DNA from: Anthoceros angustus
Lineage: Eukaryota; Plantae; Anthocerotophyta
DNA length: 64,000 nt
Assembly: GCA_010909165.1 (NCBI GenBank)
Contig: MU008160.1
Span: forward strand, 372,001-436,000
Reading direction: 5' to 3'
Shown: piece by piece, positions 5,237-41,675 of the stretch
Numbering within the stretch: the first letter of the stretch is position 1
How the letters are laid out: the number at the start of each line of letters is the position of its first letter
Notes under the pieces: generated by a model
The model's input: the letters and a program-made list of their open reading frames with translations, nothing else
What the model was told of the DNA's origin: nothing
Database searches by the model: none
Program-made: the position numbers and the translations under genes

Positions 5237-5321
5237 ACCAGCTGTTTGCTACAAACACATCAGCCTGAAGCCCTTGCTCTCTAATTTGTGCATGAAGCTG
5301 CCTCCCTTTTCCAAAGCTGCT

Positions 5322-8300
5322 GGAACCATCAGAAATGCATCGAGCGTGGGATGCATAGGTTTTCACAACGGAATTGGGGTCCTCATATTGACTTGGTTAG
5401 ATTAGATTCCTGCCCCATCACCAGATATGCCTGCGATTGAGCTCAGATGTCGCATAATCCTCCTTCCCTGTTGAGGAGAAAGGCTCGCTCAGCCTTGCTC
5501 CGAGTCCAGGATGCTTCCTATCCTCGACCAAGAAACTATGCACAAGTCCATCCATATCGGTCCACCAGCTCTGGCCTGGCTGCTTCCATGCCCTAATGCC
5601 TTTCCTCCTTGCCTGCAACTCCTGTGCCTGTTCCCACATTTGGGCATCTTTCAAGCTGCCACACTTGGCATACATGTCCACAAGGCAACTACAAACAAAC
5701 AAATCCGCTCAGCGCCAGTCGCCAACACATCAGCATGCACCTGCTGCCCAGACTTCAAGTCTGCCCCCTCGCACAAGCCTGCAGCGCTGCTACAAACACA
5801 TACCCATCCGGCTTCACGCTTGACCTGCATCTCATGATACAGTTCTAAGGCCTGACTATCCTGCCCCTGTCTAACATGCGCAGAAATGATAGCAGACCAC
5901 GTGAAGGTATCTGGTTTGGGAACCAGCGTGAACACATCCATAGCTTCTTGCAACCTGGCATGAGAGCCATACATTCGCATGATATTATTGCACAAGAACG
6001 TGTCCGATTCATATCCGACCTGCACGCTGAGGGCATGGACACGGCGACCCAGAAGATCCACCAGGCCCGTGTAATGGTCCACTGTAGGATTGATGCCGTA
6101 CTGCCTGCTCATAGCTTCAAAGTACTCCCGCCCCTTGGTCACAAGACCAGTATGACTGCATGCCATTAATATACTAAGGAATGTGATGCTATCTGGTAGG
6201 ATGCCATCCTCTTGCATTCTGACAACCAAGTCAAAGACCAGTTCAGAGTTTCCTTGACGCGTGTAGCCTGCAATCAGTGCATTCCATGCAACAATGTCTC
6301 TCTCGGGCAATGTCTCAAACACCTCCTGTGCATCCACCATACTGCCACATTTTCCATACATGTTTATCAAACTCCCAGCCACAAACACATCTGCTTCAAG
6401 TCCTTGCTCTGTAATTTGTGCATGAAGCTGCCTTCCAAGATGCAAAGCTGCCACATTTGCACATGCCTGCAGGAGGCATACAAATGTCACAGAATTAGGT
6501 GCAACAAGGCCTTCTTCTTGCATAGCCCTATAAAGACCAAGGGCTTCCTGCTCCATGCCCTGCTGCATATCCAGCAATCATGGTACTCCACGTTACCACA
6601 TTTTTTCACCAAGTCCATTAAACACTTCCCGGGCATCCTCTAGGCTACATTTTGCATACATGTTTACAAACTGCTAGCTACAAACACATCAGCCTGAAGT
6701 CCTTGTTCTCTAATTTGTGCATGAAGCTGCTTTCCGTCCTGCAAAGCCAGCATGCCCAGACTAGCACAGGCTTGCAGGAGGCACACAAATGTTACAGAAT
6801 CGGGTGCAGCTAAACTGCCCATAGCCCTGTAGACATCAAGGGCTTCCTGCCCCATGCCCTGGGAATATCCTGCTATCATGGCATTCCATGTCACCACATT
6901 TTTTCACCAAGTCCATTAAACACTTCCCGGGCATCCTCTAGGCTACATTTTGCATACATGTTTACCAAGCTGTTGGCTACAAAGACATCAGCCTGAAGCC
7001 CTTGCTCTCTAATTTGTGCATGAAGCTGCTTCCCTTTTCCAAAGCCAGGGTGCCCACACTGGCACAAGCCTGCAAAAGACACAGTCACAGAATCAAGCGC
7101 AACAATCCCTTCTTCTGCTTGCATTTCCCAGTGCAGAAGAAGGGCTTTCTGCCCATACCCTGCTTGGAATACCCTGCTATCATCGCACTCCAAGTCACCA
7201 AATCCTTTCGAGGAGCCCGTCAAACACTCTTTGGGCATCTTTCAAGCTGCCACACTTGGCATACATGTCCACAAGGCAACTACAAACAAACAAATCCGCT
7301 CAGCGCCAGTCGCCAACACTTGCACATGCCTGCAGGAGGCATACAAATGTCACAGAATTGGGTGCAGCCATGCCTTCTTGCTGCATAGCATTGAGGAGAC
7401 GAAGGGCATCCGTCCCCATGCCCTGCTGGGAATATCCTGCTATCATGGCATTCCATGTGACGACATCTTTATGCGGAAGGTCATCGAACACGCTCTGTGC
7501 GTGCTTGAGGCTCCCACACTTTGCATACATGTTCAGCAAGCTGTTTGCTACAAACACATCAGCCTGAAGCCCTCTCTCTCTTATTTCTGCATGAAGCTGC
7601 TTCCCCTTGTCCAGAGCTGTGGTGCCCACACTTGCACATGCCTGGAGAAGGGACACAAATGTCACAGAATTGGGTGCAGCCATGCCTTCTTGCTGCATAG
7701 CATTGAGGAGACGAAGGGCATCCGTCCCCATGCCCTTCTGTGAATATCCAGCTATCATGGCATTCCACGTCACGACATCTTTCCTAGGAAGTCCATCGAA
7801 AACACCCTGAGCATCATTTAGGCTGCCACACTTCGCATACATGGTTACCAAACTATTGGCAACAAACACATCTGCTTCAAGTCCTTGCTCTGTAATTTGT
7901 GCATTGAGCTGCTTCCCTTCTCCAAGGCTGGGGTGCCTACACTTGCACATGCCTGCAGGAGGCATACAAATGTCACAGAATTGGGTGCAGCCAAGCCTTC
8001 TTGTTGCATAGCAATGAAAAGACTAAGGGCTTCGGATCCCATACCCTGCTGGGAATATCCTGCAATCATCGCATTCCATGTCACCACATCTTTCTCAGAG
8101 AGTCCATCAAACACAACCTGAGCATCCTCGAGGCTGCCGCACTTGCATACATGTTTACCAAACTGTTGGCTACAAAGACATCAGCCTGAAGCCCTCTCTC
8201 TCTTATTTCTGCATGAAGCTGCCTTCCCTTCTCCAAGGCTGGGGTGCCTACACTTGCACATGCCTGCAGGAGGCATACAAATGTCACAGAATTAGGTGCA

Positions 8301-8780
8301 ACAAGGCCTTCTTCTTGCATAGCTCTGTAGAGATGAAGTGCTTCCTGCCCCATACCTTGCTGGGAGCCCAGCTATCATGGCATTCCACGTCACGACATCT
8401 TTCCTAGGAAGTCCATCGAAAACACCCTGAGCATCATTTAGGCTGCCACACTTTGCATACATGGTTACCAAACTATTGGCAACAAACACATCTGCTTCAA
8501 GTCCTTGCTCTGTAATTTGTGCATGAAGCTGCCTCCCTTTTCCAAAGCCAGGGTGCCCACACTGGCACAAGCCTGCAAAGACACACAAAAGTCACAGAAT
8601 TGGGTGCAGCCAAGCCTTCTTCTTGCATAGCTCTGTAGAGATGAAGTGCTTCCTGCCCCATACCTTGCTGGGAGAACCCTCCTATCATGGCATTCCACAA
8701 GACCACATTTTATGACAAGGTCCGTCAAACACTCTTTGGGCATCTTTCAAGCTGCCACACTTTGCATACATGTTCAGCAA
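5322..8780 (-). pseudogene. Mosaic, frameshifted PPR fragments (rearranged copies of the flanking PPR segments)
   Basis: 5322-5648 repeats ~3460-3799. 5648-6050 repeats ~10090-10500. 6050-6900 repeats ~4000-4900. The rest is a run of short ORFs (5651..6577, 6664..6897, 7300..7965, 7845..8114) with PPR motifs broken by indels. Confidence 0.75.
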
Positions 8781-9280
8781 GCTGTTTGCTAATGGCTGGT
8801 TCCTTGAAGTCAAGTGAGCGGGGGATCTGCCTGGGATGCCTGTTAGCTCACCACTTCGTTGGGTCCACAGGAGAATTTCCCAAAACGTGTCCTGTTGCCC
8901 TTTCCGTGGCTCGATTGCCACACTCAATACGGCCATAGCTCGCAGCAGCAAGCGCTACAGCCAACCGCCGTTCGTAATTCGTAATGGCGAGTGGACGTGT
9001 ACATACATACGTACTTCAGGCATGAGAATTCGAGTTTGATTTCCTTCATTTTACAAGCGGCCGCGGCGATCGAAACGTGTAAATCGCCGGACAGTCACAC
9101 CAATGTTTTGCGGGCGCTATTGTTCAAAGAGATTCGAACCATAGTTGTCAGGTTCTTAGCATTCCATGCTGACCAACGCTTCCGTTTCTCAGAGGACAAG
9201 AAAACCAATAGATTAAACCGGTGATAAGCACTGGTTTTGATGCTTCCTGCAAAGACAGCGGGAGCCAGAGGGTGTGGTGC
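8780..9280 (-). repeat. Duplicate of the PPR N-terminal/upstream block at ~11825-12310
   Basis: Near-identical to 11825-12310. It carries the start MAVLSVAIEPRKGQQDTFW fused in frame to a PPR S motif. Confidence 0.8.
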
Positions 9281-10653
9281 CCACACTTGCACATGCCTGG
9301 AGAAGGGACACAAATCACAGAATTGGGTGCAGCCATGCCTTCTTGCTGCATAGCATTGAGGAGACGAAGGGCATCCGTCCCCATGCCCTTCTGTGAATAT
9401 CCAGCTATCATGGCATTCCACGTCACGACATCTTTCCTAGGAAGTCCATCGAAAACACCCTGAGCATCATTTAGGCTGCCACACTTCGCATACATGGTTA
9501 CCAAACTATTGGCAACAAACACATCTGCTTCAAGTCCTTGCTCTGTAATTTGTGCATTGAGCTGCTTCCCTTCCTCCAAGGCCAGAGTGCCAAGACTTCC
9601 ACAGGCCTGCAGGAGGCACACGAAAGTCACCGAATTGGGTGTAACAACCCCTTCTTCTTGCATAGCTCTGTAGAGATGAAGTGCTTCCTGCCCCATACCT
9701 TGCTGGGAGAACCCTCCTATCATGGCATTCCACAAGACCACATTTTTATGACAAGGTCCGTCAAACACAACCCGAGCATCCTCTATGCTGCCACACTTTG
9801 CATACATGTTGACCAAGCTGCTCGCTACAAATACGTCGCCTTGAAATCCTTGCTCTCTAATTTGTGCATGAAGCTGCCTCCCCTTTTCCAAAGCCGGGGT
9901 GCCCACACTGGCACAAGCCTGCAAAAGACACACAAAAGTCACAGAATCAAGCGCAACAATCCCTTCTGCTTGCATTTCCCGGTGCAGAAGAAGGGCTTTC
10001 TGCCCCATACCCTGCTTGGAATACCCTGCTATCATCGCACTCCAAGTCACCAAATCCTTTCGAGGGAGCCCGTCAAACACTCTTTGGGCATCTTTCAAGC
10101 TGCCACACTTGGCATACATGTCCACAAGGCAACTACAAACAAACAAATCCCGCTCAGCGCCAGTCGCCAACACATCAGCATGCACCTGCTGCCCAGACTT
10201 CAAGTCTGCCCCCCTCGCACAAGCCTGCAGCGCTGCTACAAACACATACCCATCCGGCTTCACGCTTGACCTGCACATCTCATGATACAGTTCTAAGGCC
10301 TGACTATCCTGCCCCTGTCTAACATGCGCAGAAATGATAGCAGACCACGTGAAGGTATCTGGTTTGGGAACCAGCGTGAACACATCCATAGCTTCTTGCA
10401 ACCTGGCATGAGAGCCATACATTCGCATGATATTATTGCACAAGAACGTGTCCGATTCATATCCGACCTGCACGCTGAGGGCATGGACACGGCGACCCAG
10501 AAGCAGATCCTTCTTCGCCACACATTCCTTTAGCACCCAATAAATCAGAGATACCGAGATGCGACAGTCTGTGTCCACCATAATTCCCAGAGCCTCAACT
10601 GCCTCAGCAAGCCGCCCCTCCTGACATAGTCTGCTCACGGTATCAGCAGTCAC
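9148..10653 (-). CDS. PLS-class PPR protein, N-terminal PPR array (same locus as 3566-5236)
   Basis: VTADTVSRLCQEGRLAEAVEAL start of the array followed by regular L-S-P triplets. The frame breaks near 9300. Confidence 0.8.
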   Translation of the reverse strand: MTADTVSRLCQEGRLAEAVEALGIMVDTDCRISVSLIYWVLKECVAKKDLLLGRRVHALSVQVGYESDTFLCNNIMRMYGSHARLQEAMDVFTLVPKPDTFTWSAIISAHVRQGQDSQALELYHEMCRSSVKPDGYVFVAALQACARGADLKSGQQVHADVLATGAERDLFVCSCLVDMYAKCGSLKDAQRVFDGLPRKDLVTWSAMIAGYSKQGMGQKALLLHREMQAEGIVALDSVTFVCLLQACASVGTPALEKGRQLHAQIREQGFQGDVFVASSLVNMYAKCGSIEDARVVFDGPCHKNVVLWNAMIGGFSQQGMGQEALHLYRAMQEEGVVTPNSVTFVCLLQACGSLGTLALEEGKQLNAQITEQGLEADVFVANSLVTMYAKCGSLNDAQGVFDGLPRKDVVTWNAMIAGYSQKGMGTDALRLLNAMQQEGMAAPNSVICVPSPGMCKCGHHTLWLPLSLQEASKPVLITGLIYWFSCPLRNGSVGQHGMLRT

Positions 10654-11664
10654 CTCCCTTTCTTTTTCATCAGCTGCACTGTGCTTGAGACAGCATTGCC
10701 AGCTGGCTTCCAGTGTGTGCGTTTTGCTTGTTTCTGTATCGCATTCTTTTGCAAGTTGCTTTAGCTATGTCACTAATTTCCGCAAGGATGGGGTGTCTTC
10801 GTTGGTTCAGCTGCCTTTTGTAGCGGTTACAATTGACATCTGTTATCTCTGCTTTTGATCCCAGATGCGTCATAGAAATAGAACTTGCGCTGGAGCAAAA
10901 CAGAACAGCCAGGCGTAGCATCACACCGGACTTTTATGAAGAAGGAGGTAATAAATGAATGTGGACGTGACGTCTCCTTTCCTAGTCTTTCGTTTTCGCT
11001 ATCCAGAGCTCTGTATGCTTGCAGGGGCCTTGTCTAATCATTGTAGGTTTCTGTGCCTGGCAGTTGTCACAACTCTATAGGTCAGCGTTGAAATCTTGGT
11101 TGGATGGGTATCCCTTGGATTATGGAAGGTTGCTCCAGTTGAGAAATGCTGGCAATCCTTCTGATGAAGCTGAAGCTATTGAGCGGAAGTTCAATGTCAG
11201 AGTGATGTGTACGTGATTTGATCGTGGAGCTGCGGGGTGTAGGGTTTAGCACCTGTTTCTGTCAAATTAAGTAAAGAAGAAATTCCTATAGTGTACTTGG
11301 GTCATACTGTGTCGATCGATTGTGTTTCATGGGACTTTTGATCTGCAAGCAGGAATGCATGCTCCAAGTCTGCGTTCATGGGCTCCACACCTACAAGTGT
11401 CACAAACACGATTCAAGAACAACACTCATGGGATGCGATTCGTGAAAACGGATGAACATGATCGCCTTCAATCTTAGGAAAAAGAATTGATTACAGAATT
11501 GATTACTGAACGGGTTGACGTAACGCTGCGAAAACAGAGCCGCTGCCATGCTATCGGAAAGAAACCTGCCGAAGTTCAATGGCTGTAGCTGCTGCCTCAC
11601 AACTCGAATGCTGGTAAGGGTGAGCTCATGTTGAAGAGGAGGAGAAGGCATGTCACCTCCTTTC
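10649..11664. repeat. ~1-kb copy of 13697-14724 sitting inside the PPR gene N-terminus
   Basis: Near-identical to 13697-14724. Flanked by the direct repeat gtcacctcc(c)tttc at 10649 and 11652. Confidence 0.85.
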
Positions 11665-11964
11665 ATATCCTGCAGGCCTACGAGGGTCATGCAAATGCTG
11701 CATGCTACAGTTGGATGAAGTTGCTCGACCCATCTGCTTATCCACAGCAGGCAGCTCCGCATTTGCCATACATCCCCTGGGATGGGCTGGCTTTCTTGCA
11801 ATGCTGCTACACCTCGCGGCTTCGTTGTTTGCTAATGGCTGGTTCCTTGAAGTCAAGTGAGCGGGGGATCTGCCTGGGATGCCTGTTAGCTCACCACTTC
11901 GTTGGGTCCACAGGAGAATTTCCCAAAACGTGTCCTGTTGCCCTTTTCCGTGCTCGATTGCCAC
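11653..11964 (-). CDS. Separated N-terminal extension (probable organellar targeting region) of the first PPR gene
   Basis: GQQDTFWEILLWTQRSGEL...DPRRPAGYER aligns with GHKDRFWGQFFGTQQSGGL...DSRRPAGLER at the N-terminus of the 17389..20175 PPR ORF. Confidence 0.6.
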   Translation of the reverse strand: MAIEHGKGQQDTFWEILLWTQRSGELTGIPGRSPAHLTSRNQPLANNEAARCSSIARKPAHPRGCMANAELPAVDKQMGRATSSNCSMQHLHDPRRPAGYERR

Positions 11965-12372
11965 TCAATAACCAGCTCGCAGCAGCAAGCGCTACAGCCA
12001 ACCGCCGTTCGTAATTCGTAATGGCAGTGGACGTATACATACGTACTTCAGGCATGAATTCGAGTTTGATTTCCTTCATTTTACAAGCGGCCGCGGCGAT
12101 CGAAACGTGTAAATCGCCGGACAGTCACACCAATGTTTTGCGGGCGCTATTGTTCAAAGAGATTCGAACCATAGTTGTCAGGTTCTTAGCATTCCATGCT
12201 GACCAACGCTTCCGTTTCTCAGAGGACAAGAAAACCAATAGATTAAACCGGTGATAAGCACTGGTTTTGATGCTTCCTGCAAAGACAGCGGGGAGCCAGA
12301 GGGTGTGGTGCCGGTCGGTCGTTCCCGGCTGCGGCTGTGGGGGTGAAAGAGCTCTCGCTTCCCTGCCTCAAG

Positions 12373-12906
12373 ATGGCGTCCAGGACCGTCATGTCTTCTG
12401 CGCAGCTTCGGCTTACGTCGGGCTTGAAGGCCATCAATCAGGAGAAGCCCGAGGTAGAAAGAGTTCTGCCCAGCACATTTACTGGTTTGAATCGTTGTGC
12501 CGGTACGTGAATGTGTCGGTGTGATCTTGCGAGGTTTGCTTGCGATCTGTCATTGCAGGTGATTAGCACCGCGGTTGTGTGTTATTCAAGAGGTCACGCG
12601 ATCTGTGACCCCTGCTGGGGTCGTGTCTTGACTGGTCTTTTTTTGTTATTCCTTCATGTTTTTCTATGTAATGTACCGAGGAAATGCAGAGTCCTTGATC
12701 TCTTGCTGGATGAGTATGTCAGGATTGAAACGGTTCAGTGCGAGTCCATCAGTGGTTTGAAGCATTCTCTTGTCTCTCTGACCCTTGGCTGGTGCTGCAG
12801 GGTTGCAGTGCGAGTCCTTATGGGGTAACCTGTCTGACCGAGGGTAACTGCTGCTGAAGATGCTGTGAAAGCTTTGACGGCACGTCTTGGTGCTTTGGAG
12901 GCCTGA
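12373..12906 (+). CDS. Possible small spliced protein of unknown function (MASRTVMSSAQLRL...AVKALTARLGALEA*)
   Basis: ATG at 12373, coding-like segments and plausible GT/AG sites. The exon structure could not be resolved. Confidence 0.3.
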
Positions 12907-13166
12907 ACCCTGTGAATGTTCGGGTATATGTTGTTCATCTGTACTCATGTCATGAAATTGTGCTTTGGTGTCCTCATCGGACTCAGGCTTCCCCTGTCCC
13001 AGGCATATGCGCCCCGTTTCTGCCCATATTCGGGGGGCATCGTTTCACCCAGCTGGTGCGCCGGGGGCCTCTGCCCTGACGCGCCAAGTCTGGGAAAACT
13101 CCTCCACCTGGGAAGCAGCTGATGTTTTACTCAACAGACCAGCTTCAGACCTTCAATCTGAAGCCA

Positions 13167-14277
13167 ATGGAGCTCAGGCTACGAGCAGTCCGGGGATCGG
13201 ATATCGGAGGCTTGTGCACCTTGATGACAGGACAGGCTCAGCGCATTTCGTTCGTAGGACCATGGGCACAGCCTCCTTTGCAGCAATTTCTGCCCATACC
13301 TATAAGCCACCTCCCCAGCCTTTGGACAGGTGTGTGGCGGAAACAACTTTGGTTGCTTCTTTGGGAGCAGTAGTTGCTTGAGGCAGTGTAGGTACATCTT
13401 GACATGGTTTGTTTCCTTGCAGGCCAACAATAAATCCAGCATGGGTGACTGGTGGGGTTTTGCTTACAGCTGTAGCTGGGATTGCGTGGTTTATCCACCA
13501 GTCAGAGACATATGCCCGGCAACAACTCCTGTACGAGCGGACTGAGGATGTGATAACTCCCCCGCCATCACCGGAAATGCTTGAACGCTATGAAAGAGCA
13601 CTGGCATCTGTTGAGCAAACCGGGATGATCAATAGGGCTGTAGCTGCTCTTCGCTCCAACAATTTCATCAAGTAAGTGCACGATGGTGGATTTCCAGTCA
13701 CCCCTTCCTTTCTTTTTTCATCAGCTGCACTGTGCTTGAGACAGCATTGCCAGCTGGCTTCCAGTGTGTGCGTTTTGCTTGTTTCTGTATCGCATTCTTT
13801 TGCAAGTTGCTTTAGCTATGTCACTAATTTCCGCAAGGATGGGGTGTCTTCGTTGGTTCAGCTGCCTTTTGTAGCGGTTACAATTGACATCTGTTATCTC
13901 TGCTTTTGATCCCAGATGCGTCATAGAAATAGAACTTGCGCTGGAGCAAAACAGAACAGCCAGGCGTAGCATCACACCGGACTTTTATGAAGAAGGAGAG
14001 GTAATAAATGAATGTGGACGTGACGTCTCCTTTCCTAGTCTTTCGTTTTCGCTATCCAGAGCTCTGTATGCTTGCGGGGCCTTGTCTAATCATTGTAGGT
14101 TTCTGTGCCTGGCAGTTGTCACAACTCTATAGGTCAGCGTTGAAATCTTGGTTGGATGGGTATCCCTTGGATTATGGAAGGTTGCTCCAGTTGAGGGAAA
14201 TGCTGGCAATCCCTTCTGATGAAGCTGAAGCTATTGAAGCGGAAGTTCAATGTCAGAGTGATGTGTACGTGATTTGA
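13167..14277 (+). CDS. Hypothetical spliced protein with one predicted TM helix
   Basis: The first intron joins in frame (..WLLLWEQ|PTINPAWVTGGVLLTAVAGIAWFIH..). There is a GTAAGT donor at 13671, a polypyrimidine-CAG acceptor at ~13732, and downstream coding-like segments (RCVIEIELALEQN.., SALKSWLDGYPLDYGRLL..). Start and end are uncertain. Confidence 0.45.
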
Positions 14278-15603
14278 TCGTGGAGCTGCGGGGTGTAGGG
14301 TTTAGCACCTGTTTCTGTCAAATTAAGTAAAGAAGAAATTCCTATAGTGTACTTGGGTCATACTGTGTCGATCGATTGTGTTTCATGGGACTTTTGATCT
14401 GCAAGCAGGAATGCATGCTCCAAGTCTGCGTTCATGGGCTCCACACCTACAAGTGTCACAAACACGATTCAAAGAACAACACTCATGGGATGCGATTCGT
14501 GAAAACGGATGAACATGATCGCCTTCAATCTTAGGAAAAAGAATTGATTACAGAATTGATTACTGAACGCACGGGTTGACGTAACGCTGCGAAAAACAGA
14601 GCCGCTGCCATGCTATCGGAAAGAAACCTGCCGAAGTTTCAATGGCTGTAGCTGCTGCCTCACAACTCGAATGCTGGTAAGGGTGAGCTCATGTTGAAGA
14701 GGAGGAGAAGGGCATGTCACCTCCATTTTCACGGATTTGATGGAAGCTCATATGATTTCAGATACCATTACAAGTGTGTGGAGGGTATTTTTCACGAAAT
14801 ACCCTCCACACCCTGGTCATTTAGGGGTGAAGCTCCCTTCCGCTGCTCTGCAAAATCGCTGCCAATTCTACGTTCGTACTGCTTTCAAAAACACAGTGCT
14901 CTTCGTTGCTTGGCAGCACTTGAATCTGTCCTGACTCGTGAGCAAGAAGAGAGTTTCAACACACATCCTTTCCCTTGCCCTTTTCCATGTGGAGATGCTT
15001 GCCTCCTTGCTGCCTTTCCGTGACCTCACATGACTGCCCACCGCATTGCAGTACAAGTACTTACATGCCTGCATGCACCGTCCTGCCTCCTACTAGCCAT
15101 GCCTGTCACACTTGTTTTGCTCCATCTGCTCATCGTATCATCTTCCTCACGTAACAAACTGTGAGTGCCTGCGCTATCAGCCACTGTGCTTCTCTCTTCC
15201 ACACAATGGCTTCCTCGGCAAACCATGGGCCTGTGTCCCTTGCACATAATTCTTCCCAAGCAGCTGAAGTACACAGTAAGGTCTGTTGTAACTGGGAAGC
15301 AGCCTTTTGCAAGACACTGTGCCTCTGCACATGCACTAGTCCCATGATAGGGTTCATATCTTTCGCAACGAGCTTAGAGGCTTACGAAACGGCTTACGGA
15401 CAAAAAAACTCTAGCCTAGCTTGACAATATTGTGTGCTCCAGGAATCAGCGATTGCTGAGATACCTGTGGAAAGCATTTGCAGGTCCTAAATCTGTGCCA
15501 CCCTCTGTCAATGTCTCTTCTGGATCCAGCATGATATATACTGTGAAGATGCTCCTTCATGCTTGCCGTTCTACAAAGCTTTGTAATTTATCCTGAACGC
15601 TAG

Positions 15604-18600
15604 CTAGACTTCACTGAACGAATCCAAATTCTTCTCGTAACATACTGGGAAAGGGCTGTGCAGCCTCACTTCACTCCCGGGACGCTTTTTATCCCCGACC
15701 GAAAAAATATGCACCTGCCCGTCCATGTCTGTCCACCAGCTCTGGCCTGGCTGCTTCCATGCCCCCATTCTTATTCTCCTCGCCTGCACCTCTTGTGCTT
15801 GCTCCCACATCTGGGCACTGGTGTATATATTAGACATTAACACATATACTGCCGCGTCTTTCTGGTCCAGCTTCACTGCTTCATGGAAAGCGTGGCAAGC
15901 CACCTCCACATTGCTCCATTTTTGACAAGCACCCAGTACAGTGCGCCAAACTGCAGCCTCAGGCAGTACAGGCATTGTCCTAGCTAAAGCTAATGCCTCG
16001 TCCAGTTGTCCTGCACGACCCAGGAGATCCACCATGCATGTGTAGTGGTCCACTGTGGGAGTGATGCCTTGGAGTGACCTCATAGCCTCAAAGTACTCTT
16101 GCCCCTTGTTCACTAGACCCCTGTGACTGCATACTGTTAATATAGAGAGGAACGTGATGCTGTCTGGATGTGTACCATCCTCTTGCATCTTGACAAGCAA
16201 GTCGAAGACGAGGTCACTGTCTCCTTGTCGCATATAGCCTGCAATCAGTGCATTCCAGGTGGCTGTGTCTCTTTTGGGCAGTGCATCAAACACCTCAATT
16301 GCATCCGCCATGCTACCACACTTCCCATACATGTTTATCAAACTGCTGGCCACAAGCATATCGGATTCTAGTCCTTGTTTTTTGATCTGTGCATGAACCT
16401 GCTTTCCCAGATGCAGAGCTGCCACATTTGCACATGACTGTAAGAGGCAAACAAATGTTACATCATTGGGTGCAACGATGCCTTCTTGTTGCATAGCCCG
16501 GTAAAGACACAGGGCCTCTTGTCCCATGCCCTGCTGGGAATATCCTGCGATCATTGCACTCCAAGTCACCACATTTTTTTCATGCAGTCCATCAAACACT
16601 CCCCGAGCATCTTCTAGGCTGCCACACTTTGCATACATGTTTACCAAACTGCTGGCTACAAACACATCAGCTTCAAGTCCCTGTTCTCTAATTTGGGAAT
16701 GAAGCTGCTTTCCCTTCTCCACACCCGGGGCGCCCAAACGTGCACAGGCCTGCAGGAAGCACACAAATGTCACAGAATCGGGGGCAACAACTCCCTCCTC
16801 TTGCATAGCATTGAAAAGATCTATGGCTTCCTGCCCCATGCCCTGTTGGGAATATCCTGCTATCATAGCATTCCATGTCACCACATTTTTCCCACCAATT
16901 GCGTCAAATACCTCCCGAGCATCCACTAGGCTGCCGGACTTTGCATACATGTTTACCAAGCTGTTGGCTACCAACAACTCAGTCTGCAGCCCTCGTTCTC
17001 TAATCTGTGCATGGAGCTGCTTCCCCTTTTCCAAAGCCACCACGCCAACACTTGCACATGCTTGCAGGAGGGATGCGAATGTCAGAGAATTGGGCTCCAT
17101 CTTGCCTTCATTTTGCATAGCACTAAGAAGATGAAGGGCTTCCACACCCATGCCCAGCTGGGAGTATCCTGTTATCATGGCATTCCATGTCACCACATCT
17201 TTCTGAGGAAGTCCGTCAAACACGCCCGAGCATCCTCTAGGCTCCCACACTTTGCATACATGTTCACCAAGCTGTTGGCTACAAACACATCAGCCTGAAG
17301 TCCCTGTTCTCTAATTTGGGAATGAAGCTGCTTTCCTCTCCACACCGGGCACCCAAACGTGCACAGGCCTGCAGGAAACACACAAATGTCACAGAATCGG
17401 GGCAACAACTCCCTCCTCTTGCATAGCATTGAAAAGATCTATGGCTTCCTGCCCCATGCCCTGTTGGGAATATCCTGCTATCATAGCATTCCATGTCACC
17501 ACATTTTTCCCACCAATTGCGTCAAATACCTCCCGAGCATCCACTAGGCTGCCGGACTTTGCATACATGTTTACCAAGCTGTTGGCTACCAACAACTCAG
17601 TCTGCAGCCCTCGTTCTCTAATCTGTGCATGGAGCTGCTTCCCCTTTTCCAAAGCCACCACGCCAACACTTGCACATGCTTGCAGGAGGGATGCGAATGT
17701 CAGAGAATTGGGCTCCATCTTGCCTTCATTTTGCATAGCACTAAGAAGATGAAGGGCTTCCACACCCATGCCCAGCTGGGAGTATCCTGTTATCATGGCA
17801 TTCCATGTCACCACATCTTTCTGAGGAAGTCCGTCAAACACGCCCCGAGCATCCTCTAGGCTCCCGCACTTTGCATACATGTTCACCAAGCTGTTGGCTA
17901 CAGACACATCAGCCTGAAGCAGGCGTTCTCTAATCTGTGCATGAAGCTGCTTCCCCTTCTCTAAAGCCGGGGCACCCACACTTGCAAATGCCTGTAGGAG
18001 GGAAACAAATGTTGCAGAGTGGGGTGCAACCATGCCCTCTTCCTGCATAGTACTTAGAAGACGAAGGGCTTCCAGACTCATGCCCAGCTGGGAATATCCT
18101 GCAATCATGGCATTCCACGTCACCACATCTTTCTGAGGAAGTTCATCAAACACACCCCGAGCATCATCTATGCTGCCACACTTTGCATACATGTTTACCA
18201 GACTGTTGGCTACAAAGACATCCGCTTGAAGTCCTCTCTTTCTTACTTGAGCATGGAGCTTCGACCCTGTCTCCAAAGCGGGGTTCCCCACACTTCCACA
18301 TGCCTGCAGGAGGCAAACAAATGTCACAGAATCCGGTTTGACGTTGTCTTCTTGCATGGCCCTGTACAAATTAAGGGCTTCCTCTCCCATGCCTTGCTGG
18401 GAGTACCCAGCTATCATGGCATTCCACGTCACCACATCTTTTAGACCAAGTCCATCAAACAATGTCTGGGCGTCTTCCAAGCTGCCACATTTTGCATACA
18501 TGTTTACCAAGCTGTTGGCGACAAACCCATCACCTTGATGTCCTCGTTCTTTAATTTGTGCATGAAGCTCCTTCCCCCTCTCCAATGCCAGAGGGCCGAC

Positions 18601-20121
18601 ATTTGCGCATGCCTGCAGAAGGCATACAAATGTCACAGCATCAGGTGCGGCCACGCCTTCTTCTTGCATACCACTGTGAAGACGAAGGGCTTCTTCCCCC
18701 ATGCCCTTTTGGGAATATGCTCCTATCATGGCACTCCACGTCACAACATCTTTTTGACCAAGTCCGTCAAACACAGTCTGGGCATCTTCCAAGCTGCCAC
18801 ACTTTGCATACATGTTTACCAAACAGCTGGCTGCAAATACATCGCCCTGAAGCCCTCGTTCTCTAATTTCTGCGTGAATTCGCCTCCCTTTCTCCAAAGC
18901 CAGGGGGCCCACGCTTGCACATGCTTGGAGGAGGGACACAAATGTCACAGATGTAGGTACAGCAGTGCCTTCTTCTTCCATGGCACTGTAAAGATGAAGA
19001 GCTTCCTGCCCCATGCCCCGCTGGGAATATCCTGCTATCATGGCATTCCACATCACCACATCTTTCTGATCAAGTGCATCAAACACTCTTTGAGCATCCT
19101 CCAAGCTTCCACACTTTGCATACATGTCCACCAAGCAACTGGACACAAACACATTAGGCTCTATACCACTAGCCAGGACATCGGCATGCACCTGCTGCCC
19201 AGACTTCAAGTCCGCTCCCCTTGCACAAGCCTGGAGAGCTGCTACAAACACATGCCCATCTGGCTTCTCATTCGACCTGCGCATCAGATGATACAGTTGT
19301 ATGGCCTGCTTATCTTCTCCATGCTTAACATGCGCAGAGATTATGGCAGACCACGTGAAGGCATCTGGTTTGGCCACCGTAGTAAACACATCCATAGCCT
19401 CTTTCAGCCTGGCATAAGAAGCATACATCCGTAGAATGTGATTGCACAGGAACGTGTCCGATTCATACCCTTGCTTCACAGCGAGGGCATGAACACGGCG
19501 ACACAAAGGCAGATTCCTCTTAACCACACATTCCTTCAGCACCGTACAAAAAAGAGAGTCCGAAACATGGCAATCTGTGTTCACCAGAACTCCCATAGCC
19601 TCGACTGCCTCAGCAAGCTGCCCCTCCTGACAGAGTCTGCTCACAGTCTCAGCCGTTACGCCCCTTTCTAACCCTGCAGGCCTGCGAGAGTCACAACAAC
19701 CTTCTCTCCAATTAAGTGCCGTTCCACGACGACCCAAGTGCACATCCAGAGAACCCAGCTGCGCATCCACCCAAGCTGGCTTGTAGAAGTTGTCTGGGCA
19801 GAGGAAGTCCTGGGATTCCCAATGCATTGTCTGATGTTGCCTGTTATCCCACCGAAGCGTATGATCCAGAAAGAATTGCCCCCACAAGAGGTCCTGCCGA
19901 CAACCCTCGCTGGAACACCCGCCTGCATCCACACACCGGGCTTCCTTGCTTGCACAGGTGCTGCACCTCTCAGCTTCTTGGCTTGCCAGCAACTTGTTCC
20001 TTGAAGCCAAGCTCCCTGCAAGAGCTCTCAACCCACCACTTTGTTGGGTCCCAAAAAATTGTCCCCAAAACCGATCCTTGTGCCCACTCCGTGACTCCAT
20101 TGCAACACTCCGGCCCGCCAT
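15604..20121 (-). CDS. Large PLS-class PPR protein with E and truncated WW-type DYW; broken by frameshifts near 17250-17390
   Basis: ORFs 17389..20175 and 15604..17250 are collinear PPR arrays. Probable start MAGRSVAMES at 20121. The C-terminus has WKQPGQSWWTDMDGQVHIF and no deaminase motif. Confidence 0.85.
16678..17918. repeat. Internal tandem duplication of ~620 bp (two PLS triplets) within the PPR gene
   Basis: 16678-17298 is near-identical to 17299-17918; for example ggcaacaactccctcctcttgcatagc occurs at ~16783 and ~17401. Confidence 0.85.
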
Positions 20122-20189
20122 GAGCACCCACTCATCCCACGGAAACAAGAAGCACCACCGATCCTCCTGGAACACAATACGTGTCTAGG

Positions 20190-21084: not shown

Positions 21085-21600
21085 CGTAAGAACAATAATC
21101 AGTTTATGGAGCACACTTCTCCATCTCAAGAACATAAAGGATTTTTCCGCACTACATTGATGTACTAGGTAGAACCATCCATGAGTTCTGGATGTGATAT
21201 AAGAATCATCCATGAGTTCTGAATTTTTGAATATGATATAAAAATCATTCCATAAATCCCATCAATAGATATATATGACATCTTCCTTAAAGATCTTATC
21301 TACCTTTATATATTATTATATAAATTTTACGAAGCTTAGTATCGAAGCTTCATCCATATCCTATATAACATCGAATCCTCCTCTTCAAGGAGAAGTTGCC
21401 TTTTCTTTGGAAGTCCGACGCACTTGGCTGCTTTTCGGGCAATTCCGAAACTTGCCTTTCCCTTTGGATGTCCGGACTCCGATGAATGCTTGGGGACGAA
21501 ATGGATATCCGAAGCGTGCATTCAGCCTCTGTTTTGTTCCAATGTACCTTCCGTGGCCACTCAGGAACAAGAGACGTAGACAAGAGAACAGCGCAGGAAG
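21085..21600. repeat. ~515-bp AT-rich upstream block, duplicated at ~25275-25797
   Basis: gtaagaacaataatcagtttatggagcac...agcgcaggaagcg lies upstream of both the gasdermin-like gene and the SDH gene. Confidence 0.85.
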
Positions 21601-21644
21601 CGGGTTACATTATTCTGAGTGCCATTAATCCAGACCAGCGAGCT

Positions 21645-22529
21645 ATGGGGGCAAGTGCTTCCGTGCCCCTAGTGCTGTGGAACACGTTCGGGGCTGTTCC
21701 TGTGCTACCCGTCGGGCTCAAGCTGAAGGTGTTCAGTGTGCTGGTGAGAGACCGAGGATCCTTCTCGGTGATTGGTGATTTGGGCAGCCTGTGCGCAGAA
21801 GGGGAGTCTAAGGCCTTTCTGCAGAACGTCCTTGCCCAAGAAGATGAACGCTACATCACAGTCTCCGAGAAACCGGGACCGATTAACCAAACGGCAGCGC
21901 ATGATTCTCAATGGTTCAGGCGGCTTCTGATGCTTGAAGCGGGTCATGCTGCCGCTGTCAACGATGTGCATCAGTGGAAAATCGTGGTCCCCAGCCACCA
22001 GTTGGTATCTGCTGCAGAGGGAATCTTGAACGAGCTATTGCAGAAATTTGTTCCTGACATCGGAAATCCCCATTTCAGAGGGGGCAAGGCTCAGACTCTG
22101 TGGATCGTGACCGAGGTCATCACAGCCCATTCCCTGGACATGTATGCTTTCGACAAGAAGGGAGCCAATATCCGGTTCCCTTTGCCCCCTCTTGCGCCCG
22201 TGCCTGCGGATGTGCAAATCACCATCGGAGGCGAGGTTGCCGCACAGCAGTTCATCTCCATCCGAGGGCCACAATTGGGCGATACAGTTCAGCCCTTTGC
22301 CTTGGCCTTCAGAGGATGGAAATACAAATACGAGAACGGCTCCTTGACGGAGCCGAGAAGAGCCCGGTACGAAGCGGACTCGTTTCATGCTCCACCTCTC
22401 AATGGAGGACCCAGGAGACCTTTCCGCCATGTTAAATATGCAAGCCCCTTAGATGACCCAGACATGGCGGATTTTGTGAGGGAGAATGAATGGTTCACCA
22501 CCATCCTGGACGGTGAGGAACCCACATAG
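21645..22529 (+). CDS. Gasdermin-like pore-forming protein (294 aa, intronless; bacterial/fungal-type architecture)
   Basis: ATG at 21645 (MGASAS). Motif order matches recalled bacterial gasdermins: GAVPVLPVGLKLKVFSVLV ~ GINLILPPRDNIAPGDLII; LWIVTEVITAHSLDMYAFDKKG ~ FFVVTKVWRARGIRISVADKSK; FALAFRGWKYKYENGSL ~ IFGLTLREVTYKDGAI. A short ~55-aa C-terminal tail follows. Confidence 0.75.
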   Translation: MGASASVPLVLWNTFGAVPVLPVGLKLKVFSVLVRDRGSFSVIGDLGSLCAEGESKAFLQNVLAQEDERYITVSEKPGPINQTAAHDSQWFRRLLMLEAGHAAAVNDVHQWKIVVPSHQLVSAAEGILNELLQKFVPDIGNPHFRGGKAQTLWIVTEVITAHSLDMYAFDKKGANIRFPLPPLAPVPADVQITIGGEVAAQQFISIRGPQLGDTVQPFALAFRGWKYKYENGSLTEPRRARYEADSFHAPPLNGGPRRPFRHVKYASPLDDPDMADFVRENEWFTTILDGEEPT

Positions 22530-23029
22530 CTTTGGTGGTGGTCTTCACGTGAGGCATGGCATTGGAGTTTTGTGACACAATCAATACTCGAATGCGTTCT
22601 CACAAAACTGGAATGAGTATGGTGTAGCAATGGTAGCATCGTGGAGAGCACCTGTCGCATACTCTATCATGGATGCCGGAAATTGGTAACAGGTAGTGTA
22701 TGGGCTTTCCAGAAACGTTGTGGCTTTCTGGGAGATGGGACTAAAGAGGCTAGTTGGCAATGGATAGGCGGCAGCCGGCGTTTCCTACTAGGTAGAGTGG
22801 ATGGCTGGAAGTTGAATACGTCTCTAACTTTGTTTGCAGAATTTTCAAAGCAAACTTAGAGCGTGCTAGAAAACAAGAGCCATATCTATGTATATTCAAA
22901 AAGTAAGTTGTTATATATAAATATATTAAAATATTTTATATAAATTTCAAAAACATTTCGCAAAAGCATACAAGAAAGGGAATGTCACCTCTTCATCAAA
23001 CTTGTTGGAGCTTCCAAAGCTATAGGAAG

Positions 23030-23740
23030 GACTTCTTGCTGATGGTGTGCAGACACTCCGCAATTCAAGAGTTGCCATGAAGAGCCAATGGTCTTGGGCC
23101 ATGAGAGTGCCAGGATCGTCTTGGAGGTTGGTGGAAGTGTGACCCATCTTGCCGTCGGGGACAGGGTGGCTTTGGAGCCGGGATTCCCTGCGGTGACTGT
23201 GCAGTCTGTGAGTCAGGCAGCTATAATCTCTGCCGGAGTGTGATTCTTCGGGTCACCTCCTGTGAATGGGTCTCTTGCACAACAGGTGCTTTTATCGGAA
23301 AATTCCATGATATCCCATGGAGCATATGATTCTGCCCACCTGCAAGTGCCTTGGATACTAAGAAGCTGTGTGCCTGATCTGCAGGTTGTCCACGCTGCAC
23401 ACCGGTGCTTCAAGCTTCCAGACAACATGTCGTTGGAGGAGGGCGCTATGTGTGAGCCTCTCAGTGTTGGAGTGCACGCCTGTCGCCGAGCTGGTGTTGA
23501 GAAGGGAAGCCATGTACTCATCCTCGGGGCAGGTCCTATAGGCTTGATCACCATGATTGTTGCACGAGCACTGGGAGCCAGCAGGTTGTCTTGGCAGATG
23601 TTGATGCTCTGCGGCTTGACGTGGCGAAGAAGCTGGGAGCCGATGGCACTCTTCTTGTCTCTACTGAGTCACAGGTTCGGAGTTAGGTCAAGCAAGAACC
23701 ACATGTTTGCTCTCGGATTCCTGCAAACCTGCATTGAATT
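23030..23740 (+). pseudogene. Partial, indel-damaged copy of the sorbitol dehydrogenase gene (source ~26385-27100)
   Basis: Near-identical to the middle SDH exons and introns, with deletions (e.g. gtgtgattc versus gtgtgagattc). No 5' or 3' exons. Confidence 0.85.
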
Positions 23741-23744
23741 GAGA

Positions 23745-24442
23745 GGCTCCTTGACGGAGCCGAGAAGAGCCCGGTACGAAGCGGACTCGTTTCATGCTCC
23801 ACCTCTCAATGGAGGACCCAGGAGACCTTTCCGCCATGTTAAATATGCAAGCCCCTTAGATGACCCAGACATGGCGGATTTTGTGAGGGAGAATGAATGG
23901 TTCACCACCATCCTGGACGGTGAGGAACCCACATAGCTTTGGTGGTGGTCTTCACGTGAGGCATGGCATTGGAGTTTTGTGACACAATCAATACTCGAAT
24001 GCGTTCTCACAAACTGGAATGAGTATGGTGTAGCAATGGTAGCATCGTGAGAGCACCTGTCGCATACTCTATCATGGATGCCGGAAAATTGGTAACAGGT
24101 AGTGTATGGGCTTTCCAGAAACGTTGTGGCTTTCTGGGAGATGGGACTAAAGAGGCTAGTTGGCAATGGATAGGCGGCAGCCGGCGTTTCCTACTAGGTA
24201 GAGTGGATGGCTGGAAGTTGAATACGTCTCTAACTTTGTTTGCAGAATTTTCAAAGCAAACTTAGAGCGTGCTAGAAAACAAGAGCCATATCTATGTATA
24301 TTCAAAAAGTAAGTTGTTATATATAAATATATTAAAATATTTTATATAAATTTCAAAAAACATTTCGCAAAAGCATACAAGAAAGGGGAATGTCACCTCT
24401 TCATCAAACTTGTTGGAGCTTCCAAAGCTATAGGAAGGACTT
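23745..24442 (+). repeat. Duplicate of the gasdermin-like C-terminal 63 codons plus 3' flank (source ~22338-23032)
   Basis: [17 protein letters not shown]...LDGEEPT* is repeated exactly at 23745-23936, followed by the same 3' flank. Confidence 0.9.
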
Positions 24443-24494
24443 CAACAAGTTCATAAGATTACTATCCAAGCCTTCCACATACGTTTGTATGAAG

Positions 24495-24990
24495 CAAGAC
24501 AGCATGGCCTGCTGGGAACCTCCTAGGGATTACTGATGTTTCTGCTCCTTCTTGTCCTGGTAGCAACACAATATCGGAAGTTGTTTCCAAGACGGCGGAT
24601 CGTGCTCGCCGTGCTTTGAACTTGAGAATTTCTGGTCTTGGTAATGACATTGTTGCACCACTTGTGGCTGCAAAGGAGTTTCTCAATAGGCTAGAGGTCG
24701 ATGTGGTCGTTCCTCGACCCTTCGGGCTTGGAAAGGATCTTGATAGGGAGCGCATATTGATTATGACTTTTCACTCTATGGATGATCGCCTCCAGGTTAT
24801 AAAGGCTAGGTCTATGTTACAGACAACTCACTTATATATCAATGAGGATCTTACACCTTTGCAATGGAAGACTAAGAAGTTACCCGCTTTCAAAGCAGCT
24901 CGTTGTGCAGGTCAAGTGGCTTTCTTTCGTGGGGATGAATTGGTGTTGTTTGGCCCTCGTTCACGCAATTTCATTGACACTGTTGATTGA
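24495..24990 (+). mobile_element. LINE (non-LTR retrotransposon) ORF1-like remnant, no ORF2
   Basis: RRALNLRISGL...RERILIMTFHSMDDRLQVIKARSMLQ..LYINEDLTPLQ..FKAARCAGQVAFFRGDELVL follows the ORF1p RRM/C-terminal pattern. No ATG and no RT/endonuclease nearby. Confidence 0.65.
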
Positions 24991-25274
24991 TTAAAGATTA
25001 TTTGTCTTGTTTAAATTTTACCTTTACATTAGTCCATACTATTTTACCACAATCTATGTAGTTATCATATTTCAGTCCCATGACGGAAATCCGTCCTTAG
25101 TGGACTTAAATAAAATTCTTCTTCTTCTGCTGCTGCTGCAGGCTAGGGGTATCTATTGTTCTCTCAAAAGGTTCAGCATGTATAATTTTCAAATTGAAAA
25201 CCAATGTTGGGCGATCTTAACAACAATACCAATAGTAAGTACAACTTTTGAGATCCCAAGCTACAATATTGTAA

Positions 25275-25797
25275 GAACAATAATCAGTTTATGGAGCACA
25301 CTTCTCCATCTCAAGAACATAAAGGATTTTTTTTCCGCACTACATTGATGTACTAGGTAGAACCATCCATGAGTTCTGGATGTGATATAAGAATCATCCC
25401 ATGAGTTCTGAATTTTTGAATATGATATAAAAATCATTCCATAAATCCCATCAATAGATATATATGACATCTTCCTTAAAGATCTTATCTACCTTTATAT
25501 ATTATTATATAAATTTACGAAGCTTAGTATCGAAGCTTCATCCATATCCTATATAACAACATCGAATCCTCCTCTTCAAGGAGAAGTTGCCTTTTCTTTG
25601 GAAGTCCGACGCACTTGGCTGCTTTTCGGGCAATTCCGAAGCACTTGCCTTTCCCTTTGGATGTCCGGACTCCGATGAATGCTTGGGGACGAAATGGATA
25701 TCCGAAGCGTGCATTCCAGCCTCTGTTTTGTTCCAATGTACCTTCCCGTGGCCCACTCGGGAACAAGAGACGTAGACAAGAGAACAGCGCAGGAAGC
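25275..25797. repeat. Second copy of the 21085-21600 block, upstream of SDH
   Basis: Direct sequence match with small indels. Confidence 0.85.
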
Positions 25798-25979
25798 GTG
25801 TGTTTCACGAGAATGTCGGCTGCCGTGACGTCAGCAAGCAGTTCGGACAGTGAGTCAGTGAGGACACGAACACAGCAAGACGATCCTTGCCTGTGCTATA
25901 TTTTAGTGGCAGATGGAATCCACTCGCTGCTGATGCCCTCCTGCGAGCTCCGAAGCTGAAGTGGCTTCATCTTGCGGAA

Positions 25980-27580
25980 ATGGGCACCTTGAATGTCGAA
26001 GCTGCGGGAGGCAAGACCGAGAAGCATGACGCCCCGGAGGCGGACACTCCTGCCTGCTTCAGGCCCTTCTCCCAGGAAGAGGAGGCAGAGCTGGCGAAGA
26101 AGGGAGGCATTTTGGCTGTCTGGCTGTGCGGCATCAACAAGCTGCGCGTGCTCCCCTACTCCGTGCCCAACGCGTTGGGTTGGCTTTCGAGCTCCCGTCT
26201 CTGCGTTCGGATTGTTGAGGGACTGAGAGGTCTGAGTCGGAGAAACTGTTCTGCCAGGTGCCCAGGAGGTCAGAATCCAGATCAAGGCTGTTGGTATCTG
26301 TGGCAGCGACGTGCACTATGTGAAGGTATGTGGAAGAAGGAGACTAACCCGATGGAGTGGTGGGCTGGGGTGAGCTTGCTGAATGACTTCTTGCTGATGG
26401 TGTGCAGACACTCCGCAATTCAAGAGTTGCCATGAAGGAGCCAATGGTCTTGGGCCATGAGAGTGCCGGGATCGTCTTGGAGGTTGGTGGAAGTGTGACC
26501 CATCTTGCCGTCGGGGACAGGGTGGCTTTGGAGCCGGGGATTCCCTGCGGTGACTGTGCAGTCTGTGAGTCAGGCAGCTATAATCTCTGCCGGAGTGTGA
26601 GATTCTTCGGGTCACCTCCTGTGAATGGGTCTCTTGCACAACAGGTGCTTTTATCGGAAAATTCCATGATATCCCATGGAGCATATGATTCTGCCCACCT
26701 GCAAGTGCCTTGGATACTAAAGAAGCTGTGTGCCTGATCTGCAGGTTGTCCACGCTGCACACCGGTGCTTCAAGCTTCCAGACAACATGTCGTTGGAGGA
26801 GGGCGCTATGTGTGAGCCTCTCAGTGTTGGAGTGCACGCCTGTCGCCGAGCTGGTGTTGAGAAGGGAAGCCATGTACTCATCCTCGGGGCAGGTCCTATA
26901 GGCTTGATCACCATGATTGTTGCACGAGCACTGGGAGCCAGCAGGGTTGTCTTGGCAGATGTTGATGCTCTGCGGCTTGACGTGGCGAAGAAGCTGGGAG
27001 CCGATGGCACTCTTCTTGTCTCTACTGAGTCACAGGTTCGGAGTTAGGTCAAGCAAGAACCACATGTTTGCTCTCGGATTCCTGCAAACCTGCATTGAAG
27101 AGAGGCTCCTTGCAGGATACAGATGAAGAGATCGCAGCACTGGAGAAAACCATGGGAGCTCCTGTAGATGTGACATTCGACTGTGCTGGGTTCACAAAAA
27201 CGATGACCACTGCTCTGCAGATCACCAAATCGGGCGGCAAGGTTTGCCTCGTGGGAATGGGTCAGAGGAGTATGAACCTGCCGATTACCAATGCTGCTGC
27301 AAGGTGAGGCTGTCACAGGATGGATGGTGAGCCTGCAAATTCCTCAAATTCTGTTGAAATGGGCCTCTAACCTCTAGCGTTTTTCAGGGAGGTCGACATC
27401 GTCGGCGTCTTCAGATACCGCAACACATATCCTGAGTGTATTGATCTCATAAGCAGCGGTAAGGTGGACGTTCGACCTCTCATAACACACCGTTTCGGCT
27501 TGTCTCAAGCAGAGGTGGAGGAAGCCTTCAAAACAAGTGCCCGGGGAGGACATGCCATAAAAGTCATGTTCATTCTCTGA
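25980..27580 (+). CDS. SDH: Sorbitol (L-iditol 2-) dehydrogenase, zinc-dependent MDR family; 6 exons
   Basis: Spliced product contains [39 protein letters not shown] and FRYRNTYP, and ends HAIKVMFIL*. Canonical GT-AG introns. Confidence 0.93.
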
Positions 27581-41039: not shown

Positions 41040-41675
41040 GGGAATTGGAGCTGGAAAGCAAGAAAAGAATCCATCCCACCAGTTTTGTGTTCAGTGTAGT
41101 AGCAAGAAGGCAAGAAGAGACTCAAGCAAAGAGAGGAGACTCGCAGCACTGTCAGTGCTCACGGTAGGCATGTTTTTCTCACTCCGGACTTTGCAATGGG
41201 TTGTGACTTCTTGTGATAATCGTATGGGTGTTGTGTAGAATTGGCCTGCAAGAATATGTACAGCATGAGGCACTAATGGAACCACATTAATGCAACATGG
41301 TCTCTGGGTGGCATGCTTTGCACTTGCATCTGGTAGTGATGCCAGCTGGGCATTCAGTAGACTCAAAGCACTTTCTTGAATCAGATCTCAGTACACATTC
41401 CTTCAGAATCCGTGACATGCCCACCTGCCTGAATCTGTGAGTGGCTACGTCACTCCTATTGAGCTCTCCGAAAATTGCGCCCAGCCTAGCCCTTGTGGCT
41501 GTTTCTCCACCTGTCTGATCACGTCCACATGCCAGACTCTGAACCGCCTGCCTCGAGCTTGATGATGCGGGGTCTTCGCAAGCTCTTACATGTTGGGAAA
41601 GGAAACGGATATAGCTGTCTCGGGTGAAAGATGCGCTAAGGAACAGAGCGTGGGATGCAGCGTGGTCTATGAGCC

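Follow-up and report, generated by a model that had tools for sequence, protein, structure and literature searches.

The closest described relatives of the gene analysed here are the bacterial gasdermins, with solved structures from Bradyrhizobium (7N50), Vitiosangium (7N51 and 8SL0) and Runella (7N52), in which a core of about 230 amino acids (aa) is followed by a short C-terminal peptide and no large C-terminal domain, a gene for a caspase-like protease lies alongside, and the N-terminal cysteine reportedly carries a palmitoyl group. Animal gasdermins (GSDMA3, 5B5R; GSDMD, 6N9O and 6VFE; GSDMB; GSDME; and the Trichoplax protein, 8JYV) are cut by a caspase after an Asp in the linker and carry a helical C-terminal repressor domain of about 200 aa; among the fungal members, RCD-1 (8JYZ and 8JYY) acts via heteromers of allelic variants and HET-Q1 via a subtilisin. 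That genes of fungal gasdermins are genetically linked to those for NLRs and proteases is a familiar theme (PMC12881547). Plants are stated to lack both caspases and gasdermins and to carry out immune cell death through NLR resistosomes and MLKL-like proteins (PMC12521494, 2025), which matches the statement in a preliminary description of this DNA that land plants are held to lack gasdermins. No description of a plant gasdermin was found in the full-text literature searched, a body of text whose coverage leaves most subscription journals outside; an apparent connection of gasdermins with mosses in a Science Advances paper of 2026 proved to be a match to the name of an author. We report on an open reading frame (ORF) in a 64-kb stretch of the Anthoceros angustus assembly GCA_010909165.1 (contig MU008160.1, positions 372,001 to 436,000 of the forward strand; the whole stretch is called the window below). 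The ORF is a genuine plant nuclear gasdermin-family gene, nearest to the bacterial gasdermins in fold and sequence.

The ORF protein has the same fold as the bacterial gasdermins, which give the best scores of any family; it falls into the same size class with the same predicted plan of core and short C-terminal peptide, resembles them in sequence at the level of hidden Markov models (HMMs) and has a putative lipid-type N-terminus. The caspase-like protease gene of the bacterial loci is matched beside relatives of the ORF, although the ORF copy itself has no adjacent protease. It differs from the bacterial proteins in that its family carries a eukaryotic MG-type myristoylation motif in place of the palmitoylated Cys, in that linker and tail together span about 55 aa with a conserved Asp as against about 20 aa, and in that the partner protease of a relative in the moss Ceratodon is fused to plant-type NB-ARC-LRR-ARM receptors. 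With the animal gasdermins it shares the N-terminal pore-forming fold (Z 8-10.7) and, as proposed below, the logic of a caspase cut after a linker Asp, whereas the helical repressor domain is absent. The fungal proteins have the gasdermin fold and a similar length, with structural scores under the bacterial ones, and no partners of their kind are seen at the ORF locus; cholesterol-dependent cytolysins and MACPF proteins share the bent beta-sheet architecture, with weaker structural matches and no sequence signal. This is a gasdermin family in land plants with N-terminal and tail features of its own and, in mosses, with receptor-fused caspase neighbours.

Gasdermin identity and family

An intact, intronless ORF for a protein of 294 aa had been claimed in the preliminary description, and this was confirmed: at 21645-22529 (+) the frame is uninterrupted over 294 codons and a stop, with no intron in the coding sequence (CDS). 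The motifs quoted there are all present, namely MGASAS (aa 1-6), WNTFGAVPVLP (aa 12-22), LWIVTEVITA (aa 152-161) and FALAFRGWKYKYENGSL (aa 218-234), and the 60 residues that follow the last of these agree with the short tail noted earlier. No stop interrupts the frame upstream as far as an in-frame ATG at 21486, which extends it to 347 codons, a run of which about 0.0004 would be expected per 64-kb window from base composition; a chance ORF is ruled out by length and homology. The ATG at 21645 lies in a context good for initiation (G at -3 and G at +4) and is supported as the start because all relatives begin at the equivalent MG.

Sequence profiles link the protein with bacterial gasdermins. 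The PADLOC bGSDM HMM matches the ORF protein at E 2.2e-6 and nine of the 12 family members described below (best E 9.8e-10), and the NCBIfam model prok_gasdermin (NF051890) matches it at E 0.0018 and likewise nine members (best 2.7e-6), all of these NCBIfam matches being under the curated cut-off of 100 bits. When a profile of the family was compared with 177,635 PDB sequences, the top three were the bacterial gasdermins 7N50, 8SL0 and 7N51, co-linear with the family at marginal E values of 0.015-0.11; the family motif LfiVqkV (LWIVTEV in the ORF) aligns with LYVITQV of 8SL0 and 7N51 and with FFVVTKV of 7N50. Single-protein phmmer against the PDB sequences gave no match. In language-model features, clusters of Ascomycota hypothetical proteins and the Bact_GSDM cluster stand at 0.95-0.96, and the pejvakin cluster at only 0.88.

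The predicted fold leads to the same family. An AlphaFold2 model, built from the 12-sequence alignment and no templates, reached a predicted template modelling score (pTM) of 0.72 and a mean predicted local distance difference test score (pLDDT) of 69.9; the model made without an alignment (pLDDT 30) was unusable. Foldseek against the PDB returned gasdermins at all of ranks 1-19, the first being 7N51 at E 5.7e-10, and in a search independent of Foldseek the first 12 of 48,161 PDB representatives were all gasdermins. Structural alignment with VIA-align gave Z 12.0-12.3 over 211-227 residues for the bacterial gasdermins (7N50: Z 12.3, 211 residues, root-mean-square deviation 3.8), the bacterial chains being aligned from residue 3-9 onward, compared with 10.2-10.7 for the Trichoplax gasdermin, 8-9 for mammalian gasdermins, 5.8-7.4 for RCD-1, 5.4-6.7 for cholesterol-dependent cytolysins and about 4 for MACPF. 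The best match among ESM Atlas models was a Bact_GSDM cluster (TM 0.64/0.66). MACPF and cytolysin folds are ruled out, as their Z scores lie well under those of the gasdermins, and identity to the solved bacterial gasdermins is only 8-17%. The gasdermin identity proposed in the preliminary description has been borne out by direct matches of bacterial gasdermin HMMs (the NCBIfam one sub-cut-off) and by AlphaFold and Foldseek, in which a gasdermin came out best in place of MACPF, aerolysin or no fold. The ORF very probably encodes a gasdermin-fold homologue of the bacterial gasdermins.

A HMMER scan of 1.84 billion representatives yielded six proteins at E <=0.001, five of which could be aligned to the N-terminal portion or to most of the query; the sixth, a repetitive protein matching over a short stretch only, was set aside. 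The best homologue (P0001) has E 1.7e-17 and 31% identity over aa 9-229. A profile search then recovered seven proteins, six of them new, including "hypothetical protein KC19_5G008600" of the moss Ceratodon purpureus. The resulting family comprises 12 sequences of 287-429 aa with 22-30% identity to the ORF protein, and 12 residues are invariant across it (M1, G2, W12, P22, L33, C50, G53, K56, L59, F135, L152 and A221). In a tree, the moss-type sequences, which carry a long acidic C-terminal extension that the ORF protein does not have, form one group, and the ORF protein, P0001, P0002 and P0004 each have a long branch of their own; the family is therefore old and diverged. Word-indexed protein searches gave no match with the single ORF protein and returned only a query member with the four most divergent members, and two scans of metagenome contigs found no relatives. 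The sequence comparisons place the ORF product in a small, deeply diverged family of uncharacterised eukaryotic proteins, one of which is from a moss.

Two different family members (P0008 and P0009) come from one sample (L009 and L010), which means that at least one source organism has more than one copy of the family. The runs that gave P0004 and P0011 (L006/L007 and L011/L012) have accession numbers next to each other.

Plant origin and local duplications

Because bacterial proteins give the best matches in structure and to HMMs, because the flanks of the gene are rearranged, and because its GC content at third codon positions is slightly higher than in neighbour genes (0.61 vs 0.46-0.56, somewhat above them and not alien), a bacterial or fungal contaminant, a misassembly or a very recent foreign insertion was weighed against a plant gene. 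Both flanks are, however, copies of the adjacent plant gene, and this makes contamination very unlikely; moreover, the gasdermin gene lies between PLS-class PPR genes and further genes of plant type, with PPR genes within 1.5 kb, its closest relatives are eukaryotic proteins with MG starts, one of them on a 20-Mb moss chromosome, and its identity to solved bacterial gasdermins is low, as given above. Two runs, filed under two studies and both from one sample, also contain the stretch, and one of these runs may have been the source of the assembly itself. Judging from where PLS-class PPR genes are known to occur, we infer that the gene content of the window is that of land-plant nuclear DNA. 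The concern about contamination raised in the preliminary description can be largely laid aside in view of the plant-type flanking genes, the base composition and the relatives on a moss chromosome, and a foreign origin of this kind is most improbable.

The duplications around the gene (Table 1) involve a neighbouring alcohol-dehydrogenase-family gene, in whose exons at the parent locus ADH_N and ADH_zinc_N were identified (Pfam). Upstream copy A loses its similarity near 21608, some 40 nt short of the gasdermin ATG; 21603-22337 (codons 1-231) is unique within the window; and B and C, like C and B', share 9-10 nt where they join. Repeat B is the native 3' end of the gasdermin gene and B' the copy, because relatives from other organisms carry the tail motif; for the same reason, a tail foreign to the gasdermin gene was rejected.

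A chimeric ORF of 224 codons at 23262-23936 (+) joins copied dehydrogenase exon and intron sequence to the copy of the gasdermin linker and tail, and its final 61 residues are identical to those of the gasdermin ORF, YEADS and the tail helix being among them. The chimera probably arose as a by-product of the duplication; that a free copy of the cleavable tail might serve as a decoy is pure speculation.

These duplications bear on the main alternative to a working pore former, according to which the ORF is a real gasdermin homologue, yet a silent or decaying solo paralogue that was moved or reshuffled by recent local duplication, has no protease partner and is intact only through its youth. The 97-99% identity of the flanking duplications and the short junction overlaps fit this alternative, as do the lack of a caspase or NLR gene in the window and of the acidic extension of the moss clade in the ORF protein. 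Its 294 codons are nevertheless free of stops and frameshifts, all family-invariant residues are retained, the ATG has a good initiation context, neither the tail motif nor the linker Asp has been lost, and bacterial and animal gasdermins need not adjoin their protease. We regard a silent or decaying copy as unlikely.

Protein layout, gene neighbourhoods and a proposed death pathway

The N-myristoylation pattern, applied as MG, neither a charged nor an aromatic residue at position 3 and a small residue at position 6, fits 11 of the 12 family members, with M1 and G2 invariant and S6 nearly so. The moss clade begins with MGNLCSS and thus offers a Cys too; the ORF protein has no N-terminal Cys and has the MG..S motif in that place. 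Acylation of its N-terminus is a prediction from the consensus. A linker Asp followed by Gly, Ser, Ala or Cys occurs in 11 of the 12 members as well (YEAD/S here, YRAD/G, FQAD/S and SQAD/A in others, the slash marking the candidate cut), and classical caspases prefer an Asp at P1 and a small residue at P1', so that the linker may be the site of cleavage. The tail motif is conserved in the relatives as D-x-x-M..(F/L)....WF and is modelled as a helix at residues 272-279 (pLDDT 57-66 in the AlphaFold2 model). Structural alignment with full-length, inactive bacterial gasdermins spans the tail, reaching model residue 290 and the chain ends; folding the core (aa 1-238) with a separate tail (aa 255-294) gave a score of 0.02, which speaks neither for nor against docking. 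Together, these features suggest that the protein is laid out in the bacterial manner, with a lipidated N-terminus, a core that forms the pore, a linker that can be cleaved and a short C-terminal peptide that inhibits the core.

Gene neighbourhoods of the relatives point to possible partners. In Ceratodon, the family member lies on a 20-Mb chromosome and is followed there by two genes that combine Peptidase_C14, NB-ARC/NACHT, LRR and ARM domains; in the ORFs of this locus the C14 domain is found at E 2e-19 and the NB-ARC-LRR-ARM part was confirmed too, and the solved sequences nearest to the C14 domain are the animal caspases 8, 4, 11, 3 and 1. On a metagenome contig of 30.7 kb, two NB-ARC-LRR genes with a separate 275-aa Peptidase_C14 product between them lie upstream of a family member (P0005), and at the end of the contigs of two further members (P0004 and P0009) stands, in each case, a convergent gene of this LRR-ARM type. 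NLR-type genes are thus linked to the family in four independent neighbourhoods, and a caspase domain in two of these.

One of the genes beside the moss gasdermin-like gene (Ceratodon purpureus CM026425.1; 12504-18244 (-) of locus L005), with caspase domain, NB-ARC, LRR and ARM repeats, also contains a segment with a lipase-like AHGLGG motif and no Pfam match. Its caspase domain reads SAYG where caspase-8 has SHG, and this caspase copy may be inactive, judging from these residues.

From this layout and these neighbourhoods, a mechanism can be proposed in which Gly2 would be N-myristoylated, as the eukaryotic counterpart of the palmitoyl-cysteine of bacterial gasdermins, and the C-terminal helix (aa 271-284) would fold back onto the core and hold it inactive. 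A caspase-type protease would then cut the disordered linker after the conserved Asp245, and the released core (about aa 1-245) would oligomerise in the membrane to a beta-barrel pore and kill the cell as an immune response. Candidates for this protease would be those beside the gene in two relatives, NB-ARC-LRR-fused in Ceratodon and the separate 275-aa product on the metagenome contig; with none in the window, the protease for the present copy would have to be encoded at another place in the genome. The evidence somewhat favours the view that the ORF product is a working pore former, myristoylated and activated by a protease. The wider proposal draws on the gene neighbourhoods of the relatives and is more tentative: non-seed land plants might possess a pyroptosis-like death pathway in which caspase-bearing intracellular receptors (NB-ARC-LRR in mosses) cut myristoylated, bacterial-type gasdermins after a conserved Asp and the fragment punches pores, the ORF being one executioner paralogue.

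Several observations weigh against these proposals. None of the 12 members, the ORF protein included, matches Pfam Gasdermin (PF04598), PF17708 or Bact_GSDM (PF26164). No Peptidase_C14 or NLR gene was found within the window by Pfam on long ORFs, nor by tblastn at E <=10 with the caspase and NLR proteins of the moss, which gave nothing better than E 1.6. In the one Ceratodon caspase domain that is readable, the catalytic His aligns with a Tyr, the Cys being kept, and plant metacaspases cleave on the C-terminal side of Arg or Lys rather than of Asp. Further in-frame ATGs lie upstream of 21645 (at 21486 and six codons later), and initiation at an upstream in-frame ATG would abolish myristoylation. 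The locus has been recently rearranged, its promoter-proximal region being copied from the upstream region of the neighbour and its 3' end duplicated.

Some eukaryotic gasdermins, such as the Trichoplax gasdermin and RCD-1, are moreover activated without cleavage, and the ORF might accordingly encode a protein of gasdermin fold that needs no proteolysis for its action or is non-lytic, through a redox or lipid switch as in the Trichoplax gasdermin, through heteromers as in RCD-1, or in a pejvakin-like membrane role. The absence of a nearby protease, the invariant Cys50 and the presence of the Trichoplax gasdermin and RCD-1 (Z 7.3) among the structural matches are compatible with this, whereas the disordered linker with Asp and a small residue and the separate conserved tail helix are the layout of cleavage-activated bacterial gasdermins, and caspase domains are linked to two relatives; we consider activity of this kind quite unlikely.

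A genuine gasdermin family of land plants, with receptor-fused caspase domains beside it in mosses, would extend the gasdermin-protease death module to the plant kingdom, would inform the choice between inheritance of the module and its acquisition from bacteria, and would provide a directly testable cell-death executioner for bryophyte-grade plants. The myristoylation motif in place of the bacterial palmitoyl-cysteine would provide a test case for the control of gasdermins by lipidation.

Other features of the window

Table 1. Positions of the gasdermin-family gene, its predicted parts, the local duplications and other annotated genes in the window
Feature	Position	Strand	Basis
Gasdermin-family CDS, 294 aa	21645-22529	+	intact ORF, homologues, fold model, bacterial gasdermin HMMs
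N-terminal MGASASV	21645-21665	+	fits N-myristoylation consensus G-{EDRKHPFYW}-x(2)-[STAGCN]-{P}
Predicted pore-forming core, aa 1-238	21645-22358	+	model pLDDT mostly 70-94
Core motif LWIVTEVITA	22098-22127	+	within predicted pore-forming core
Last core strands FALAFRGWKYKYENGSL	22296-22346	+	within predicted pore-forming core
Disordered linker, aa 239-263, with candidate cleavage site YEAD/S	22359-22433	+	pLDDT 31-35
Asp245 codon of YEAD/S	22377-22379	+	in disordered linker
Conserved tail motif, aa 271-284, candidate autoinhibitory helix	22455-22496	+	kept in relatives; modelled helix
Copy A of region upstream of alcohol-dehydrogenase-family gene	21086-21602	+	97.4% identical to 25271-25798
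Repeat B, gasdermin codons 232-294 and about 500 nt downstream	22338-23035	+	99.3% identical to 23745-24443
Fragment C, copied dehydrogenase-gene piece of about 730 nt between B and B'	23026-23753	+	98.6% identical to 26381-27112
Repeat B', second copy of gasdermin 3' end, in-frame fusion to C	23745-24443	+	self-comparison
Parent locus, upstream region A' and first exons (including C') of Zn-dependent alcohol/sorbitol-dehydrogenase-like gene	25271-27112	+	self-comparison
PLS-class PPR ORFs	3566-5236, 5651-6577, 7300-7965, 9148-10653, 15604-17250, 17389-20175, 36335-39595	-	Pfam
Photolyase/cryptochrome-type gene exons	41673-44299	+	FAD_binding_7 E 8e-16
DUF538 gene	45337-45867	+	E 1e-25

The seven PLS-class PPR ORFs, at 3566-20175 and 36335-39595 (-), are intronless, and three of them have an E motif, one of these also E+; so dense a set fits a plant lineage in which the family of RNA-editing factors has expanded greatly. 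The photolyase/cryptochrome-type and DUF538 genes downstream of the locus are ordinary plant genes. An ORF at 24616-24990 had been considered L1-ORF1-like, which Pfam did not confirm. An AT-rich island at 46000-50000 (GC 0.34-0.35 vs about 0.50 around it) contains short exons, of which that at 47816-47971 matches a cyclic-nucleotide-binding domain (Pfam E 5e-5), where the gene of a PKA regulatory subunit had been flagged earlier. Between 50000 and 62000 many long, overlapping ORFs occur on both strands, none with a Pfam match; GC rises abruptly to 0.59-0.65 with a strong excess of C and T on the + strand, and with its (CCT)n run and degenerate tandem repeats of 65-131 nt (50978-52543) this part of the window looks like repeat or low-complexity DNA.

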